DNA from: Trichosphaerium sp. ATCC 40318
Taxonomy: Eukaryota > Protista > Tubulinea
Assembly: GCA_038496445.1 (NCBI GenBank)
Contig: JALMLS010000631.1
Span: 1-64,000, forward strand
Direction of reading: 5' to 3'
DNA: 64,000 nt
In this document: positions 1-9,405 of the stretch, piece by piece
Layout of the letters: every line of letters starts with the position of its first letter
Numbering within the stretch: position 1 is the first letter of the stretch
Position numbers and translations under genes: made by a program
The notes under the pieces: generated by a model
Databases searched by the model: none
Seen by the model: only the letters and a program-made list of their open reading frames with translations
Told to the model about the DNA's origin: nothing

Positions 1-130
1 AAGAAAAACCTCTCAAGTCGGACCATAAACGGATAGCTCTAAACTTAAAGGTACCAATCAATAATTTTACACCTGAAAAAAGATACAAAGTCAAAATAGA
101 AAGGTTGTACCTCAGAAATGTAAGTAACAA

Positions 131-1059
131 CAGGGCTGAAACTAAACAAGGCTTTGCCTTAAATATGAAGGCATTTTTTTAAAATCAGGCATTGATGGCA
201 AAAATCAGGCATGCAAAAATGGCAATGCCTGATTTTGCAAAGGCAATGGCAAAAAAGGCAAAAATCAGGCATTGAAATAAGGCTTTGTTGGGCAATGCCT
301 TAATTATTGCAATGCCTTGTTTTTTTTAGGCAATGCCTGCCCTAGTTTTTTTATGCATTGCCAGCCTTAAATTTACAGGCACCAATTAGGCATTGGTTGT
401 GTACACATTGTACATTAAGGATACATTGGTTTAAGGTAAGTTTCCACCACACCAACACTTCCTAAACATTTTTTTTCATTTACTACTGACGTTTTATATA
501 GACGACGTCACCACTCGCTTAGTATTTTATGGATTCTAACGAAACCACCGCCATTCGAACCGCAGCACCCAAATGCACCTACAACAGGAGTATAGGTACT
601 TTAAACCATTTTTCCAGTCCGCGAAAATTATACCAATAATTTGTTAATTTTTTTTTCTAGCTAAAGGTTTTTTTTCACATGGAGGACATTGAAGTTTTTT
701 GTGTTTTGTGTACTGTACTTTAATAAATGAATCACTATTGTATGCCTATATAAAGCCTTGTTTTATGAGTATATGGTGCCTGGGTTATGCCCAAAAATTG
801 AGGGCAAAAATGCCTTATTGTTGCACTAAAAATGAGGCATTATTGAACCAACAATGCAGGCTATTTTAAGGCTAATTAGTGAACCAGTTGCTTGCTATTT
901 GGCCCAAATATGAGGCTCCAAAGCCCAAAATTACAAGGCAATGCCTCATATTTGCTCATTTTTTTTGGCAAAAACAAGGCAATTTGGTGAAAAATAAGGC
1001 TGTATTTGGTGGCAAAAAAAAGGCTTTTGCAAAAAAAGCCTTATTTAGTTTCAGCCCTG
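131..1059. mobile_element. Non-autonomous TIR DNA element E1 (929 bp), family A, 2-bp TSD AA
   Basis: TIR cagggctgaaactaaacaaggc / gccttatttagtttcagccctg (21 of 22 match). Many AGGCAT/ATGCCT subterminal repeats. Flanked aa|...|aa. No transposase ORF. Confidence 0.9.
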
Positions 1060-1398
1060 AAATACCTCAAAAAACTACTTGCCTGAAATAACTTAAAGGA
1101 GCACATCGGACCTGAGGTTATAGATATATATCACAAAGCATTAAACGAAGGATACGATGAAATTGCGGATATTTATTGGAATTTATTTTTAGAAAAATTT
1201 ACCAGTAAACTTTATACTTACCTCGAATCTAAAATAGGACATAAATCCAAGCTTAGAGTAAACCTAACAGAAAAAATCATCAAAAACTTTTCTCTAAACA
1301 ATGCTAAAACGTTATTTAACATAATTAAACATGGTAGGTATCTTATTAGTTCAAAAATCAACATTACACAAGGAAAAAAGATATTAGAGAATGCGCTA

Positions 1399-2458
1399 CA
1401 GGTCTAAAAAAATATACCAGTTTTTTTGGTATATACCACTTTTATACCACTTTTTTATACCAGTTTTTCATGGTATATACCAAAAAAAGTGGTATATTTT
1501 GACTGAAATATACCAAAAAAAGAGGTATATTGACAAAATATACCAAAAATATACCAAAAAAAACAGGTATAAAAACAGAAAATATACCACTTTTTTTCAC
1601 CAGAAAAAAAAAAATATACCACTTTTTTATACCACTTTTTTTAGGTATATACCAGTTATATACCACTTTTTTATACCAGTTTTTCATGGTATATACCACT
1701 CTTATATACCACTTTATGCCTACTTATGGTACACCTGCAATTCCAGAAAATACACTTTATTTAATACACAGTTTGTGAGTTACAAGTTTTGGACAATGTC
1801 CACTACAGTTACATTACTATGGGCGTCTGGAAAATTCGTCCATCTCCATGAGCTTGCTGTGCCTACTGTAAAAACATGCTGCGCACCTAATGAAAGTGGT
1901 CCCACCCGAATCTATCAATTACTAAGGCCTACGGAGGTCGGTTAATGTATATCAAACGAAAATAAAATAACACTTTGTCTGGTACCCACGAACGTCTGTA
2001 TAATACCTGCAATATAGTTTCCTTAATGTTGGTACTGGAATCAGGTCCTGCGGTTTGAATGAGCTTGGTTTGGTTAGATTCTATGATATACTAAGGTCCC
2101 TACGCACCGTTCAATGTATGACGTCTATGATCGTTCAACAAGAAAACCCATTACCAAAAAGCTCCTTAATGACCTTCTTGAAGCATACCATAAAAGTGGT
2201 ATATACCAATAAAAAGGTGGTATATACCACATATCATAAAAAAGTGGTATATACCACTTTATATACCATTTTTAGAAGGTCTCATTATGTGAATGAAAAG
2301 TGGTATATACCACTTCCATATACCACTTTTTTATTCACTTAATTTCTAAAAAAAGTGGTATTTCAAAATGGTATATACCAGTTCATATACTATTTTGTTG
2401 AAAAAAGTGGTATATACCATAAAAAAACTGGTATATACCACTTTAATTTTTAGACCTG
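1399..2458. mobile_element. Non-autonomous TIR DNA element E2 (1060 bp), family B, 2-bp TSD TA
   Basis: TIR caggtctaaaaa / tttttagacctg. Dense ATATACCA(C)/GTGGTATAT repeat arms at ~1410-1715 and ~2185-2445. Flanked ta|...|ta. Confidence 0.9.
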
Positions 2459-3029
2459 TACTTCACAAAGTCAATAAAATACTTAAAGGCTTTGAAGATA
2501 CTATACCTCTAAGCAACAAAGAATATATAGATTTCGCAAATGAAGCAATGAAAAAACTGAAAGTGGTCAAAGATCAAATTAGGAAGGAAATAAGAAACAA
2601 ACACGTTGACAACATGATCGAAAAAATAGTCAATAGTAAATCAAGATCTCTCTTTCGCAGATACAGAAAACTCAGAAACCTCAAAACTAACGATTTCCCT
2701 CAATCATTCACTAGAGAAGATGGTACAGAAGTCGCATCAAATGAAGAAATGAATGAAGAAATTAAACATAAATGGGGTACGGTTTTTAAAGATAGCGAGG
2801 TACAAAACGCAGAAGAACTTATACCTTTTGACATGGAACCTAAAACTAACAACGAAGAATTTGACATAGACGCAATTGATGAACATACTTTCAAAAACGC
2901 TGCCAAACGAATAGCTTCATTTAAAGCACCAGGGTTCTCCAAAATTGACGCTAAAATATATAAAACGCTTCCTAATGAAGCAATCACCATGCTCACTAAC
3001 CTTATGAAATATTGCTTTAAAATGTCTTT

Positions 3030-4067
3030 CAGGGCTGAAACTCAACAAGGCATTTTTGGACAATGCCTAGGCATTTTCATCAAATAATGCCTTATTTTTT
3101 ACAAAAATGCCTAGTTTTTGCTTCATTCAAAAAGGCAAATACAGGGCAATGCCTTATTTTTTGCTCCAAAAATGCCTTATATTTGATGAAAAATGCTTGC
3201 ATCTGGTACACAAGATTGCAATGGTTTTGCCTGCATATTTTTAGGAATTATGCCCTTCAAATTAGGGCATAACTCATGCATCAATGCCTTATTTTGAAGG
3301 CAAAAAGTAAGCATTATCATAGTCTACAGTGCCTAATAAACCAGGGCATTTTCAGGTAATAACACAACTATTTATTTTATAATACAGTACACATACAATA
3401 CACAAAACTTCTAAGTCCACATTTGAAAAAACCTTAAAGAAAATATGAGATGGTGTAGAAAAAAAAAAAAAAAAAACTTACCTTGTAGTGTTAGAATTCC
3501 GCGGTCCTGGAAATATCGCGGAGTTCACTCCTACTACTGTTGTAGGTGAAATAGAGTGCCGCGGTTCGTTTGGCGGTGGTTTCGTCTAATTTCATGAATT
3601 ACTAAGAGCGCTAGGTGCCTATCTATATAAAACGTCAGTAGGTGATGTGAAAAAAAAAGTGTAAAAGTTGTTTGACTGTTACTTACCTTAAACCACTTCC
3701 TTAATGTGATCAGTCCTATGATATAGTATAGGCAATGCCTTATATATGAATTAAAATACAAGGCATATATTGCTTAAAAAAATAAGGCATAATAAAGGCA
3801 TAAAGTACTTGCAATACAGGGCATTACTTGATTTTATGCAATGCCAAAAAATGCAATACAAGGCATTACCTGATTTTATGCAATGCCAAAAGATGCCCAA
3901 AAATGCCTGGTATTAATGTTTTTTTGATGAAGGCATTGCCTTTTTGTAAAAATGCCTTATTTTATTGGGCATTGCCAAATGCAAATGCCTTGATTTTGCC
4001 ATCTAATGCCAAATGTTAGAAATATGCATCATTTTTTAAGGCAATGCCTAGCTGAGTTTCAGCCCTG
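3030..4067. mobile_element. Non-autonomous TIR DNA element E3 (1038 bp), family A, inverted relative to E1, 2-bp TSD TT
   Basis: TIR cagggctgaaactca / tgagtttcagccctg. AGGCAT/ATGCCT repeats. The internal core is a reverse-complement homolog of the E1 core. Flanked tt|...|tt. Confidence 0.9.
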
Positions 4068-7000
4068 TTTATTCCTGAGAAATGGAAAAACAGTACCACT
4101 ATAATGCTAGTAAAAAACGGTGATCCAACAGATGCGTTAAATTTTAGACCAATATCACTACTCAACTCATTGTATAAAATTTATTCTAGAATACTTACAG
4201 ACGTATTAGAATCAGCTAATAAAAATAACAATCTGTTAAGTAAAAACCAATACGGTTTTGTTAAAGGTAAATCAATTCATATGGCACATAAGAAATTTAT
4301 CTCGGCGGTAAGAGAAGCTAATCATAAAGGTAAGGATCTATATGCGTTATTTATAGATTTAAGAAAGGCGTACGATTCAATTCCACATTGGGCTATTGAC
4401 AATATCTTCAAATGGCATGGTTTCAGTAAAAGTATAAGAAAAGTGTTGGTATCGCTTTTTAAAGAAATCAAGACAACGATTAAAACTCAGGTGGGTGAAG
4501 CAGAAATTAGAATTAATAGAGGTACTAGACAAGGAGATATCATATCACCAATGATTTGGGATTTCTTTATTAACTCGCTTGTTCTTAAAATGGAAGAAAG
4601 TAAGTTAGGTTTCAAATGCGCTGACGGTAAAATTGTTACAGTAATCGCTTACGCAGACGACTTAGTGATTTTAGCGGAGAACTTAGAGGATTTACATAAA
4701 CTATATGACCTACTTCTTTCTTTTTGCTCCTTTTATGACATTAATATTAACACAGAGAAATCATCATTGCTCACTAACAAAGAAGAATTAGCTGAAGAAA
4801 TCTACCATAAACCATTGCGCTGGAAAGGTAGTCAAATCCCAATAGGAAAACCAAATGAAACGTATAAATACCTTGGTATACTAATTAACATGAATCTAGA
4901 CTTTAAGGAACATTTTACCAAATTAGGAAGCTTCTTTAAGACGGTAATTAATTTAGTTAACACTAATTACTTTACTACAGCCCAAAAAGTCAGGATTATT
5001 AATCAAGTAGCAATAGCTAAAGTTAGATTTACACAAAGCGTCATCAACATCCCTAAAGTATGGCTAAAAAAATGGGATAACTTAGCAACAAGAATTATAA
5101 AGCGTAAAGTTAAAATACAAACAAATACACATAATGAGAGAGTTCAATCGAGCAACGTAGGTTTTGGTCTTTTATCATTAAAGAATACTCAAACACAGGC
5201 ATTTGTAAAGACAGCTCTCAAAGATAATCTCAACTGTAAAGAAGGTGCAATAGGTAGTGAATCAGTAGCCTCAGACTTTAAAACGTGTAAAAGGCTCCTT
5301 AATAATACTAACTACAATATTAAATACATAGGTTTGATTCGTAAAACGTCTTTACTAGCAAAACCCATGAGTGTGCCAACTTTTAATAGCATTACTACAA
5401 AAGTCAATGGTACGTCAATTATTGCAACGGATGGTAGCGTTATAGATGGAGTTGCATACAGTGGCATAGCGTTGTCAATCAACAAAAACAAATGGTTGAA
5501 ATTTCATACTTTATTTCATGACGACTCAAATGGGGCCGAACTAGAAGCTATAAAAATGGCAGCTCGTATCACACCCAAAGAGTTACCTATTATTATAGTT
5601 ACTGACTCTTTAAATTCTAAAAGATGGATCAAACAATTCGACAAATGGCTCCCTATTAAAAAATTCAAGAGTCCTTACGCACACACTCTAGAACGCATAA
5701 ATGACCTCATAAATAATAGAATTGGTACTACTGACATTATATGGTATCCGAGTCATACTCTGGAAAGTAGCTCTAAAAAGGTAGCAGCACTTAAAGCTTC
5801 TAAACACATCACTAGAAAGTACTCAGCCCAATTAGTTCCATGGTGTATAGCTTTAAACGCATACACAGATAAGATTGCATCTGATAAGTGCTATAAAGCA
5901 GAAGGTAGATGCTTACTAGGTACTAATCTACACCCTATAAGAACAGGTAACTACTGTCTTGTTAATTCAAAAGACTCTCCTACATACCATGACCCGTGGA
6001 AAATTCTTAAAATAGCTGCGGAAGAAAAAAAAATTAAGTTCATTAACAATGTTTCTAGTAATCTAGGTAGAAATAGATTAAATCTAGATATGGCTCGATC
6101 CAAGATTTCTTATTTCAACATGCAAAATGACAGAATAGTAGATTTTGCATTCAGAGTCAAGCGACATGCATTGTTTCTCAACAGTGTGAAATTCCACAGA
6201 CAACCAAAAGTCTGTGACTCTCTATGGGCTAGAAGAACTAAAATTAATTATCCTAACCCATTTTGTTCTATGTGTCAAGATGGATCTCATGAAACCTTCC
6301 AACATTTCGTTAGATGTAAAAACAATCCGTTCGATATCAGAACGCATCTGTTTTATCACATTGCCAGAATATACACTGAAACTATTGACGAAGAATTCCC
6401 AGACTCTGAGGAAAAATTCCGTAAGTTCAATTTTTATTCACTTATCAGAAATAAAACTAAAGATAACTACTTTGTTTCGAACTCCTTCCAACTCAGATAC
6501 AAAGTTAAACACGCTATGTTCTGCGTTCTTCAAGCAGGTAGAAATATAGATTCGCTTATGGAAGAGGAATATTGGGTTGATAAGTATATTGGAAAAAATT
6601 TATTGGGTGCAGTGGTGGAAAAATTTATTGACAATTACGGTTTTATGGGCGTCACACATAATTTATCTTTCCGTGAAGCACAAGGATGGGTCACAGAAGA
6701 ATTGATCAGCAAGATAAGAGAAACTTTTGCCATTAATACACCCAAAGCTAGGTTCATGGCACAACGTATTAACCGTATTTATATTGCATTATTATATAGA
6801 AGATATATATCATGTTGTAAGAAAGATATCACATATAAGAAATCGGTGGGCGCTTACCTAGGGCCGAGGGTTTTTGCATTGGCTAACGACAATATTAGAA
6901 ATATCTTAGGTCTTTAGTATCTTGAAATTTCTCCTCTTTCTTTCTTTTACATTTGTTTCTATTCTTACCGGGCTTCCCTTTTATAGTTGAAGTTAGTTTA

Positions 7001-7344
7001 TGGAGGAGTTAGGTTAGAAGCTTACGTTATAGCATGGTTCACTATTATAAGTTTATTGGCATAATGGTCTCACACTGTTTAGAAACTCTAGGTCACCTCG
7101 TCTCCTTTTCTGTATATTGGTATTCTTTCTTGTTTTTTTCCCCCTTTTTTTTTTATCAGTCGCCCATAATAACCTGGCTGCGTCTAGAAGTTCAGAGTTT
7201 ACCTCTTGTAGTGTCCTAGTGGACCAGTAGAACTTAGGTTTTCCGAAAGGAAGACCGTTGACGTTAAATAAAATAATAATAATAATTTCGAAGTCTTTAT
7301 TTCTTTTGAACTATCTTTTGACTTTTCATCCATTCTAAACAATC

Positions 7345-9405
7345 ATGAGCGCATCTTCAAGCCCTATTTTAATGATACCAGGACCAATCGAGGTCGATCC
7401 ACAAGTTCTCGAAGCGCTAGGTACGTTTATGTCATTTTCACTAAAAAACAAATGACAAGTCGCCTAGGAAGGCGCCCAGAGAGCCACGTATCGCCTGTAT
7501 TCATTAAAATCTTCTCTGAAGTGTTAATAAACCTAAGGTACTGGTAGTTTACGCTGACTGTAGCTTATGATGTATAGAAAGGTATTTTGCTGTAAAAAAG
7601 GGCAACCGTTTGTAATTTCAGCCTCAGGTACATTAAAAACTCAGTAAACATCGTCTAATAAACGAATAGGCACCTTAGGATGGGATGCAACTGTAGTTAA
7701 CTTGTTTGAACAAGTATGTATTTAGCTATTTTACAAAAAGTGTTTGTAACTTTTTCTTTCCAAAAAGGACAGCGACGCTCTTATCATTAGCTCAGGATAC
7801 GTACGTGACCTTTTTTAAAGCGGTTTTTTTGTTGTACTGACAGTTACAAAATAGTTCGGTGACCGATTTTTGAACACGTGCGTGAACGTATAATCACGTT
7901 TGTTGTTTTGTGCCAACAAAGTATCGTTAGGTTCAAATCATACAATGTAAATGCAGATATAGTCCAAGGACCTGCTGGAACTTTTCCATCAATGGAAGAT
8001 ATAAAGGTACGAGTTGTTTTAATTGTTCAAGTGATCATTAGGTAAAAACAACGCTAACACTGTAAATAGAAAGCTCTATCGAGTAAGAAGTATCGTGGCG
8101 TTACGATAACCCATGTTGATACCAGTACTGGAGTACTAGCGGGTAAACCTTTACACGTGAATCACGCTTAACAAAGTTTAGATGTGAAATCCGTTGCTGC
8201 AGTTGTAAAAGAAGTATCACCAGATACATTAATTATAGTTGATGGCGTCTGTGCATCAGGTAATCATACTTTAAGATACATGAAATTCTAAAATTTAATT
8301 AGCTGGAGAAGAGTTGCGAATGGATGAATGGGGTATCGATTACGTAATGACTGCAAGCCAGAAAGCTCTTGGCGTTCCTCCAGGTAAGTTTTCTTAAAAA
8401 CTTTCGTAACGTCTTTTAACCTTAAATCGAAGGTCTATCTGTTTCAATGGCATCAGAACGTGCCATAGTACGTCTTGCATATAAACCAACGTCTTTTTAG
8501 CGTTTTAATATTATCAACAGGCTACACACGGAGCAAGAGTAAAAAAGGTACCTTTTGCATTTTTTTAATTTTTTTTTGTTGGTTGTAATTTTGTTTTCTA
8601 AAATAGGTTCCTAATTACTATGCTGACTGGCAAAACTGGCTTCCAATTATGAAAGCATACGAGTCACTGAAACCATCATATTTTGCTACACCTCCAGTTA
8701 ATCTCATCACTGCGTTGCACGTGTCATTGACCCAAATGCTCGCCGATGGTATGTGTACAATTATCATCAGCAAACTCCATTAGTAGACTACTGAATTATT
8801 AATCCTATTTGTCAAGGTGGTATGGAAGCAAACTGGAGCAAACACAAGAAGGTATGTAACATAATTGTCATTCTCTTATTTACCGAGCGTAGGCAGCTGC
8901 AGCTTTCAAATCAGGTATACCACAACACGCCTTAGAAAGGATGTAATTGTTTTTACTCGTCCTAATATTGTTATGTAGCTGTAAAAGCTCTCGGATTAGG
9001 TACAGTACCAGTCGAATCGTACTTGGAAGCAAATACGCTTTCTTGTGTACGCTTCCCTGAAGGCATAAATGGTATGGAAAGTTTAGAAGAGTTACTATTA
9101 TTGTGTTACGACTAAACATATCTCTAGCTGGTTCTCTTCTACCAAAAATTAAAGCCCAGGGCGTCATTCTTGCAGGAGGACTACACAAAGACATAAAAGC
9201 AGAATACTTCAGAGTTGGTCACATGTCAATATCAGCAACAAGACCAGCACTTGGTCATTTGTATGTCGTTACCATCATTTACAAGATTAACTTGTTTTTA
9301 AGGACCAAAACAGTTGAAGCAATTGAAACAGCACTCGCAGAATGTAACTACGAGTTTAAAAAAGGAGCTGGTATCGAAGCCTTCGCAAATGCAATGAAAT
9401 GTTAG
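7345..9405 (+). CDS. AGXT: Alanine--glyoxylate / serine--pyruvate aminotransferase (class V PLP), ~20 short introns
   Basis: Exon peptides [69 protein letters not shown]. Confidence 0.9.

Follow-up and report, generated by a model that had tools for sequence, protein, structure and literature searches.

Elements of the hAT superfamily make target-site duplications (TSDs) of 8 bp, Tc1/mariner elements insert at TA, the ends of Tigger, Tc1 and pogo elements start with CAGG or CAGT, and a further superfamily, CMC (CACTA/Mirage/Chapaev), is one that Yuan and Wessler are said to have described in 2011 with TSDs of 2-4 bp and subterminal repeat arrays. In compact protist genomes, such as that of Dictyostelium, mobile elements pile up in clusters, and gene-dense DNA stays clean. 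Here we compare with these systems three inserts bounded by terminal inverted repeats (TIRs), E1 and E3 (family A) and E2 (family B), which interrupt the second open reading frame (ORF2) of a long interspersed nuclear element (LINE) in the amoeba Trichosphaerium sp. ATCC 40318 (assembly GCA_038496445.1, 70 Mb in 642 contigs). The stretch analysed, called the window below, comprises positions 1 to 64,000 of the forward strand of contig JALMLS010000631.1 (C107 here; other contigs are likewise given as C and sampled loci as L with a number) and starts at the first base of that contig. The arrangement probably reflects ordinary nesting of recently active non-autonomous DNA transposons in a young LINE at a repeat nest.

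With Ac/Ds the inserts share a short TIR and subterminal arms of 250-400 bp made of short repeated motifs, and like Ds they are internally deleted, about 1 kb long and, as we infer for E1-E3, mobilised in trans; one element terminus, CAGGGCTGAAA, is one base away from CAGGGATGAAA, which we take to be the end of maize Ac. However, the TSD is 2 bp (3-4 bp at some family A sites) instead of the 8 bp that hAT requires, so that hAT was rejected, and no hAT transposase could be linked to the inserts. With Tc1/mariner/pogo elements and their miniature inverted-repeat transposable elements (MITEs; Stowaway, Tigger-derived) they share the 2-bp TSD, but the duplication is not TA-specific, TA being only a minority, which rejects strict Tc1/mariner; in addition, the duplication reaches 3 or 4 bp at some family A sites, and members of that superfamily do not usually have long subterminal repeat arrays. 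The preliminary description of this DNA had guessed at CMC-like elements. The TSD lengths (2 bp, with 3-4 bp at three family A sites) and the subterminal repeat arrays agree with this guess, whereas the ends (CAGGG, CAGGT or CAGTG) are not the CACTA/CACTG of CMC, and no CMC transposase was linked, no search for one having been made.

Introners, the MITE-derived introns of Fritillaria borealis and the non-conventional introns of euglenids likewise combine a TIR with a TSD, and their removal with one TSD copy restores the frame (PMC11282704). Read as AG...AC, E2 would carry the commonest splice-site pair of Fritillaria; the elements described here, however, sit in mobile elements rather than in host genes, and in an amoeba genome. 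Fritillaria-type introns were rejected for E1 and E3, which fit neither AG-AC nor AG-AT in frame. From protist transposon nests of the Dictyostelium kind nothing essential sets this locus apart, the guests here being uncharacterised CAG-ended DNA elements.

The interrupted LINE and its guests

The LINE occupies bases 1-7287 of the window, and its ORF2 is broken three times, by E1, E2 and E3, whose coordinates, CAGG...CCTG ends and TSDs (Table 1) are those of the preliminary description. When each insert is deleted together with 2 bp, a single LINE frame of 1,293 codons results, with the TGA at 1084-1086 as its sole internal stop, in keeping with the earlier account of three independent TIR insertions into a barely decayed LINE encoding an apurinic/apyrimidinic endonuclease (APE), a reverse transcriptase (RT) and RNase H (RNH). 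The RT domain was recognised with confidence (RVT_1, Pfam 8.8e-37), and RNase_H scored just below its cut-off (2.1e-5; 25.1 against 25.8 bits). Since the contig opens inside the LINE, its upstream part lies outside the window, where only the last ~40 codons of the endonuclease are found; the full APE (Exo_endo_phos_2, 2.7e-8), the upstream 328 codons and ORF1 are all present on a sister copy on contig C85. At the other end, a (TAA)n tail (7270-7287) follows a 367-bp 3' untranslated region (UTR). The element thus has ORF1, ORF2 with APE-RT-RNH, 5'-truncated copies and a simple-repeat tail, as expected of a LINE. The family consists of one full-length locus, two 5'-truncated copies (C171 and C226; 98% identity) and short tail fragments, and an exact-protein look-up of the 937-aa ORF gave no match.

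Table 1. Features of the interrupted LINE at the start of the window
Feature	Position	Strand	Remarks
LINE ORF2, C-terminal end of AP-endonuclease domain (KSDH motif)	1-130	+	From translation
Candidate phase-0 short LINE intron (hypothesis)	120-1098	+	GTAAGT 120-125 to AAG 1096-1098
E1, family A1 non-autonomous TIR element, 929 bp	131-1059	+	TSD AA 129-130, 1060-1061
Gapless core of ~100 nt common to E1, E3 and E2	483-590 (E1); 3530-3640 (E3); 2040-2150 (E2)		E3 and E2 copies on opposite strand
LINE ORF2, linker after endonuclease	1062-1398	+	
E2, family B non-autonomous TIR element, 1,060 bp	1399-2458	+	TSD TA 1397-1398, 2459-2460
LINE ORF2, linker to RT start	2461-3029	+	2929-2930 (CC), empty site of element C
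E3, family A3 element, 1,038 bp	3030-4067	-	TSD TT 3028-3029, 4068-4069
Rest of LINE ORF2, unbroken	4070-6917	+	RT 4137-4880; RNase H ~5418-5660; Cys/His-rich C-terminal part; stop 6915-6917
LINE 3' UTR with (TAA)n tail	6918-7287	+	Truncated copies on C171 and C226 match up to here

The inserts themselves carry short TIRs and arms filled with family-specific repeats. The inverted ends of E1 (25 nt, 96% match) start with CAGGGCTGAAACTAAACAAGGCTTT or, at greater length, CAGGGCTGAAAC, and its arms contain AAGGCATT/AATGCCTT repeats, whereas E2 ends in CAGGTCTAAAAA and TTTTTAGACCTG, has a TIR of 12 nt and bears GGTATATACC palindromes in its arms. The TIR of E3 (25 nt, 92%) has a 13-nt end identical to that of E1, and the interior of E3 is inverted relative to E1, the two being 66-78% alike. 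Across the genome there are 201 exact matches to the 13-nt family A end, corresponding to about 100 elements, and none to the reversed control, so that the family A repeats are not due to chance. At least 40 full-length copies each were found of the E1 type (96-100% identity) and of family B (97-100%), together with at least 40 copies of the E3 type (94-99%), all with unrelated flanks. The three ORFs inside the elements (184, 70 and 69 aa) gave no credible Pfam match. With TIRs, a TSD backed by an empty site, many copies and no coding capacity for a transposase, the inserts belong to the non-autonomous class II TIR elements. On one small contig (C445:263-7256; loci L020/L021), the flanks of one E1-type copy are the exact reverse complement of those of another, which indicates an inverted duplication of an element-bearing segment.

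Related CAG-ended families, with 2-bp TSDs throughout, were found at the sampled loci, namely C (starting CAGTGGTAAAATG, ~1,031 bp), D (starting CAGGTCTGAAAAT, 1,981 bp) and F (starting CAGTGGTGGAATCGG, ~1.07 kb). The interior of element C (C85:1722-2752; loci L032/L062) contains two short TTAGGG telomere-like runs. Families A and B could not be aligned outside the gapless core of ~100 nt listed in Table 1, which comprises a CTATATAAAACGTCAGT box and a GGTTCGAA-like box and in E1 is placed between AAG/GTAAGT (433-441) and tttttttctag (650-660). The core had no match in families C or D and none in Rfam or among tRNAs, and RNAalifold on both strands returned weak energies, no real covariation and no supported consensus fold. 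RNA genes in the inserts were likewise rejected, as Rfam yielded only sub-threshold miRNA-like matches on the palindromic arms, and no tRNA.

In family B an exact 2-bp TSD of varied sequence was present in 26 of 29 real copies (TA 8, AA 7, AT 5, the remainder including TT, TG, CT and others); TA accounts for 8-9 of 26-29 copies (~30%) in this family and for 3 of 22 in family A. The family A duplication is mostly 2 bp; to restore the host ORF, however, L003 needs 3 bp, L016 and L023 need 4 bp each, and L008 needs 1 or 4 bp, which shows that the length of the duplication varies. The target motif amounts to a weak V-WW-B preference only. The 2-bp length was confirmed by the empty E3 site on C85 and by the empty element C site in the window.

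A short phase-0 intron in the LINE is a further candidate feature (Table 1); it would be 48 nt long once E1 and its TSD are discounted, and it would hold both E1 and the sole in-frame stop. Other candidate GTAAGT...AG segments of ~25-50 nt were seen in the window by eye. In the unrelated LINE at L006 (C1), too, the only in-frame stop falls within a GT...AG segment, here 39 nt long and in frame (L006:2759-2797), and taking this segment out leaves normal spacing before the endonuclease RID motif. Both stop segments carry AAAAACT-N6-CTGAAATAA; as a general signal, AAAAACT N5-8 CTGAAATAA was rejected, with three genome matches against three for the reversed control, and the shared motif may be chance. 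It would be unusual for a LINE to keep introns.

The last 138 bp of the LINE ORF, the 3' UTR and ~1.6-2.1 kb of downstream sequence (window 6783-9000) recur twice on C184 (4573-6790 and 12795-14487; ~100% and 95% identity), 7.7 kb apart and with the same LINE break point. The downstream part alone, which to judge by eye may open with an aminotransferase-like gene followed by gtacgt, is also found at C414:14938-16654 and upstream of the LINE on C85 (10733-11593). These recurrences could be due to segmental duplication or to 3' transduction.

Host sites of the families and the sister copy

The in-frame removability of the three inserts is a trivial, general outcome of recent insertion and is not special to this LINE. 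Each sampled copy was deleted with its TSD in silico, and long ORFs then spanned the junction at many loci, every identifiable one being another mobile element: gypsy-type elements with protease, RT, RNH and integrase (L036, L038, L039, L044, L045, L048, L025, L005 and L008), other LINEs (L006, in the endonuclease, and L023) and a pogo-like transposase with the element inside its DDE_1 domain (L003). At L004 a LINE endonuclease ORF lies beside the element copy, and the spanning ORFs at L007, L012, L016 and L047 gave no usable family match. The families are also nested inside each other. RT genes are numerous in this genome, and most are still open for 1,000-2,700 codons. Removal restores the frame because a TSD-forming insertion hit an ORF that was still open and undecayed.

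The surroundings of the sampled copies point in the same direction. Among ~55 sampled loci none had its copy within a recognised host exon, and a few copies lie beside ordinary genes (a proteasome subunit, an EF-hand protein). Retroelement coding sequence was present within 1.5 kb at 17 of 57 loci, and 37% of the flank bases are also found flanking other sampled loci, mostly as copies of these families. About two thirds of the family A ends fall in contigs numbered 200 or above, which by a rough estimate hold well under a fifth of the genome. The remaining 57 kb of the window, which is genic, contains no other CAGG/CAGT TIR pair with a TSD; the preliminary description had likewise seen no CAGG-type element there. 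Copies are clustered on small contigs rich in repeats and within one another, so that the association is not specific to this LINE family; with a single full-length locus in that family, targeting of the family as a whole does not call for explanation. The suggestion that this retroelement is itself a target is not upheld, given that unrelated gypsy elements, LINEs, pogo elements and fellow elements are hit alike, while the neutral alternative, which had been offered as the mundane one, fits best, the same families being found in open ORFs of several unrelated elements. This distribution is the pattern expected if genic insertions are purged and repeat insertions persist.

The sister copy, on the reverse strand of C85:1-7053, is the same LINE with E1 and E2 at the same positions. 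It is without E3, having instead a clean empty site, ATGTCTTT/TATTCC, which contains the junction tcttttatt that had been predicted for DNA lacking E3. It also has element C (1,031 bp, TSD CC) at the equivalent of window position 2930, where the window is empty, 99 bp from the E3 site. Element D and an E3-type copy are also found upstream on C85, so that C, E2, E1, D and the E3-type copy are five elements within 10 kb, and the locus is therefore a nest. The 5' part and 5' flank of the LINE occur only on C85, and the two copies were compared over window positions 1-5689. They are probably two haplotypes of one locus, the alternative being a recent duplication. In either case E3 and C inserted after the two copies had split, which shows that transposition is ongoing. 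For the empty E3 site the simplest account is that the two copies are polymorphic for the insertion, with no need for excision.

Possible explanations: neutral nesting, targeting and precise removal

Given the structure, copy numbers and host sites described above, it is reasonable to suggest that E1, E2 and E3 are non-coding, internally deleted cut-and-paste transposons of ~1 kb with a Ds- or MITE-like layout, in which a short TIR beginning with CAGG is followed by arms of 300-400 bp whose repeats presumably serve as transposase binding sites. A transposase supplied in trans would insert them by a short staggered cut, giving a duplication that is usually 2 bp and mostly A/T. The expansion of the families is very recent, and they are still moving; insertions in host genes would presumably be lost by selection, and those in mobile elements and repeat nests would persist and accumulate, with the outcome that several elements could come to lie in one young LINE whose ORF has not yet decayed. 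The LINE copy in the window should be dead because E2 and E3 split its coding sequence, while E1 may sit in a short intron.

Several observations weigh against neutral nesting. Retroelement ORFs look over-represented, making up ~20-25% of the sampled insertion sites, when retroelements, by a rough estimate from at least 150-205 RT copies, account for a few percent of the genome. E1, E2, C and E3 fall within 906 bp of a ~5.3-kb LINE (p ~0.017 if random, calculated post hoc), and the two that post-date the split of the copies are those 99 bp apart. No autonomous partner was linked to the elements, and among the 100 family A end matches listed there are no pairs more than 2.2 kb apart. The genome has hAT genes (22 Dimer_Tnp_hAT matches) and pogo genes (20 matches, about a dozen copies keeping an intact DDE_1 ORF of 484-615 aa, for example at C98:30821, C91:49836, C1:360878, C355:7390 and C36:9731), and the one pogo element examined has TIRs unrelated to those of the inserts. 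This element (L063:4716-8349; C1:9715-13348), ~2.7 kb in native length, has 54-nt TIRs starting with TTAGTGAAAAG and a transposase with HTH_Tnp_Tc5 and DDE_1, the latter interrupted by an E1-type copy whose duplication is 3 bp long (GAA). Finally, between the two copies of the locus there are 22 substitutions in 2,656 bp of LINE (0.83%) against 4 in 1,989 bp of E1 and E2 (0.20%), about four times less within the elements (p = 0.003-0.005), which plain shared descent does not predict. Of these differences 25 out of 26 are transitions, and the first 868 bp of E1 have none, the nearest in the LINE lying 44 bp to the left of E1 and 23 bp past its right end. This low divergence could have arisen from polishing of the assembly or gene conversion, either of them acting on high-copy repeats, or else from excision with subsequent repair templated by the homologue.

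The first two of these points could instead indicate that CAG-ended elements actively favour other mobile elements or the chromatin of these, whether by being tethered to heterochromatin, by preferring a certain DNA shape or by hopping over short distances from donors in the nest, so that the cluster in the LINE would reflect targeting and not neutral survival. Several observations would suit such a preference: insertion sites are enriched in retroelement and transposase ORFs and in same-family copies, four insertions, of which two are recent, share a short segment of one LINE, and the nest also holds element D and an E3-type copy a few kb upstream. The target motif, however, shows little beyond its weak WW preference, the hosts are unrelated to one another (gypsy, several LINEs, pogo, MITEs), copies also adjoin ordinary genes, and the absence of elements from the window's 57 kb of genic DNA is predicted by purifying selection as well. 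As for short-range hopping, several distant copies resemble E3 at least as closely as its E3-type neighbour does over the 118 bp compared. We therefore regard targeting as unlikely to account for the cluster, and a mild active preference for repeat chromatin may nevertheless act alongside neutral persistence.

Another reading holds that each element is taken out precisely along with one TSD copy, leaving its host usable, either from RNA, on the model of introners, Fritillaria MITE-derived introns and euglenid non-conventional introns, or from DNA, as in the excision of ciliate internal eliminated sequences (IES-type) or the seamless excision of the piggyBac type. Host ORFs that are intact on both sides at many sites, element ends that pair by design and the clean empty E3 site could be taken in its favour, and if it were true, repeated excision with homologue-templated gap repair could explain the ~four-fold lower divergence of E1 and E2. 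Intact flanking ORFs are, however, expected anyway when all parties are young, and the low divergence between the copies may come from assembly polishing or from gene conversion in a high-copy repeat; the ~55 sampled loci also include no copy in a recognised host exon. Splicing in particular fits poorly: the sole GT...AG pair near the family B ends (CAG/GT...TTTTTAG/ACCTG) leaves 10 extra bases and shifts the frame, the family A end is without GT, and the elements and their shared core occur in both orientations within one LINE transcript. A search of read runs found none from RNA; contigs of four runs covered element interiors only, from other copies, gave no coverage of the LINE and contained no joints. 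Precise removal is very improbable, and equally little credence is due to its stronger form, in which frequent seamless removal (by excision and homologue repair, or as end-paired non-conventional introns) would keep the interrupted elements, this LINE included, functional.

Implications for mobile DNA in Trichosphaerium

With neutral nesting as the preferred reading, in-frame removability is a caution for scans that rely on sequence only, because it indicates a young guest in a young host and not a host whose function is maintained. The lower divergence inside the elements than around them is left as a small puzzle, and E3 and, on C85, element C provide ready-made polymorphic markers for the locus. 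More broadly, these families represent a diverse and currently mobile group of ~1-kb DNA transposons in a little-studied amoeba, with an unusual mix of hAT-/pogo-like CAG ends, long repeat-filled arms and variable A/T-rich TSDs (2 bp, and 3-4 bp at some family A sites). They are an uncharacterised group worth cataloguing, and they accumulate in other mobile elements of the genome.

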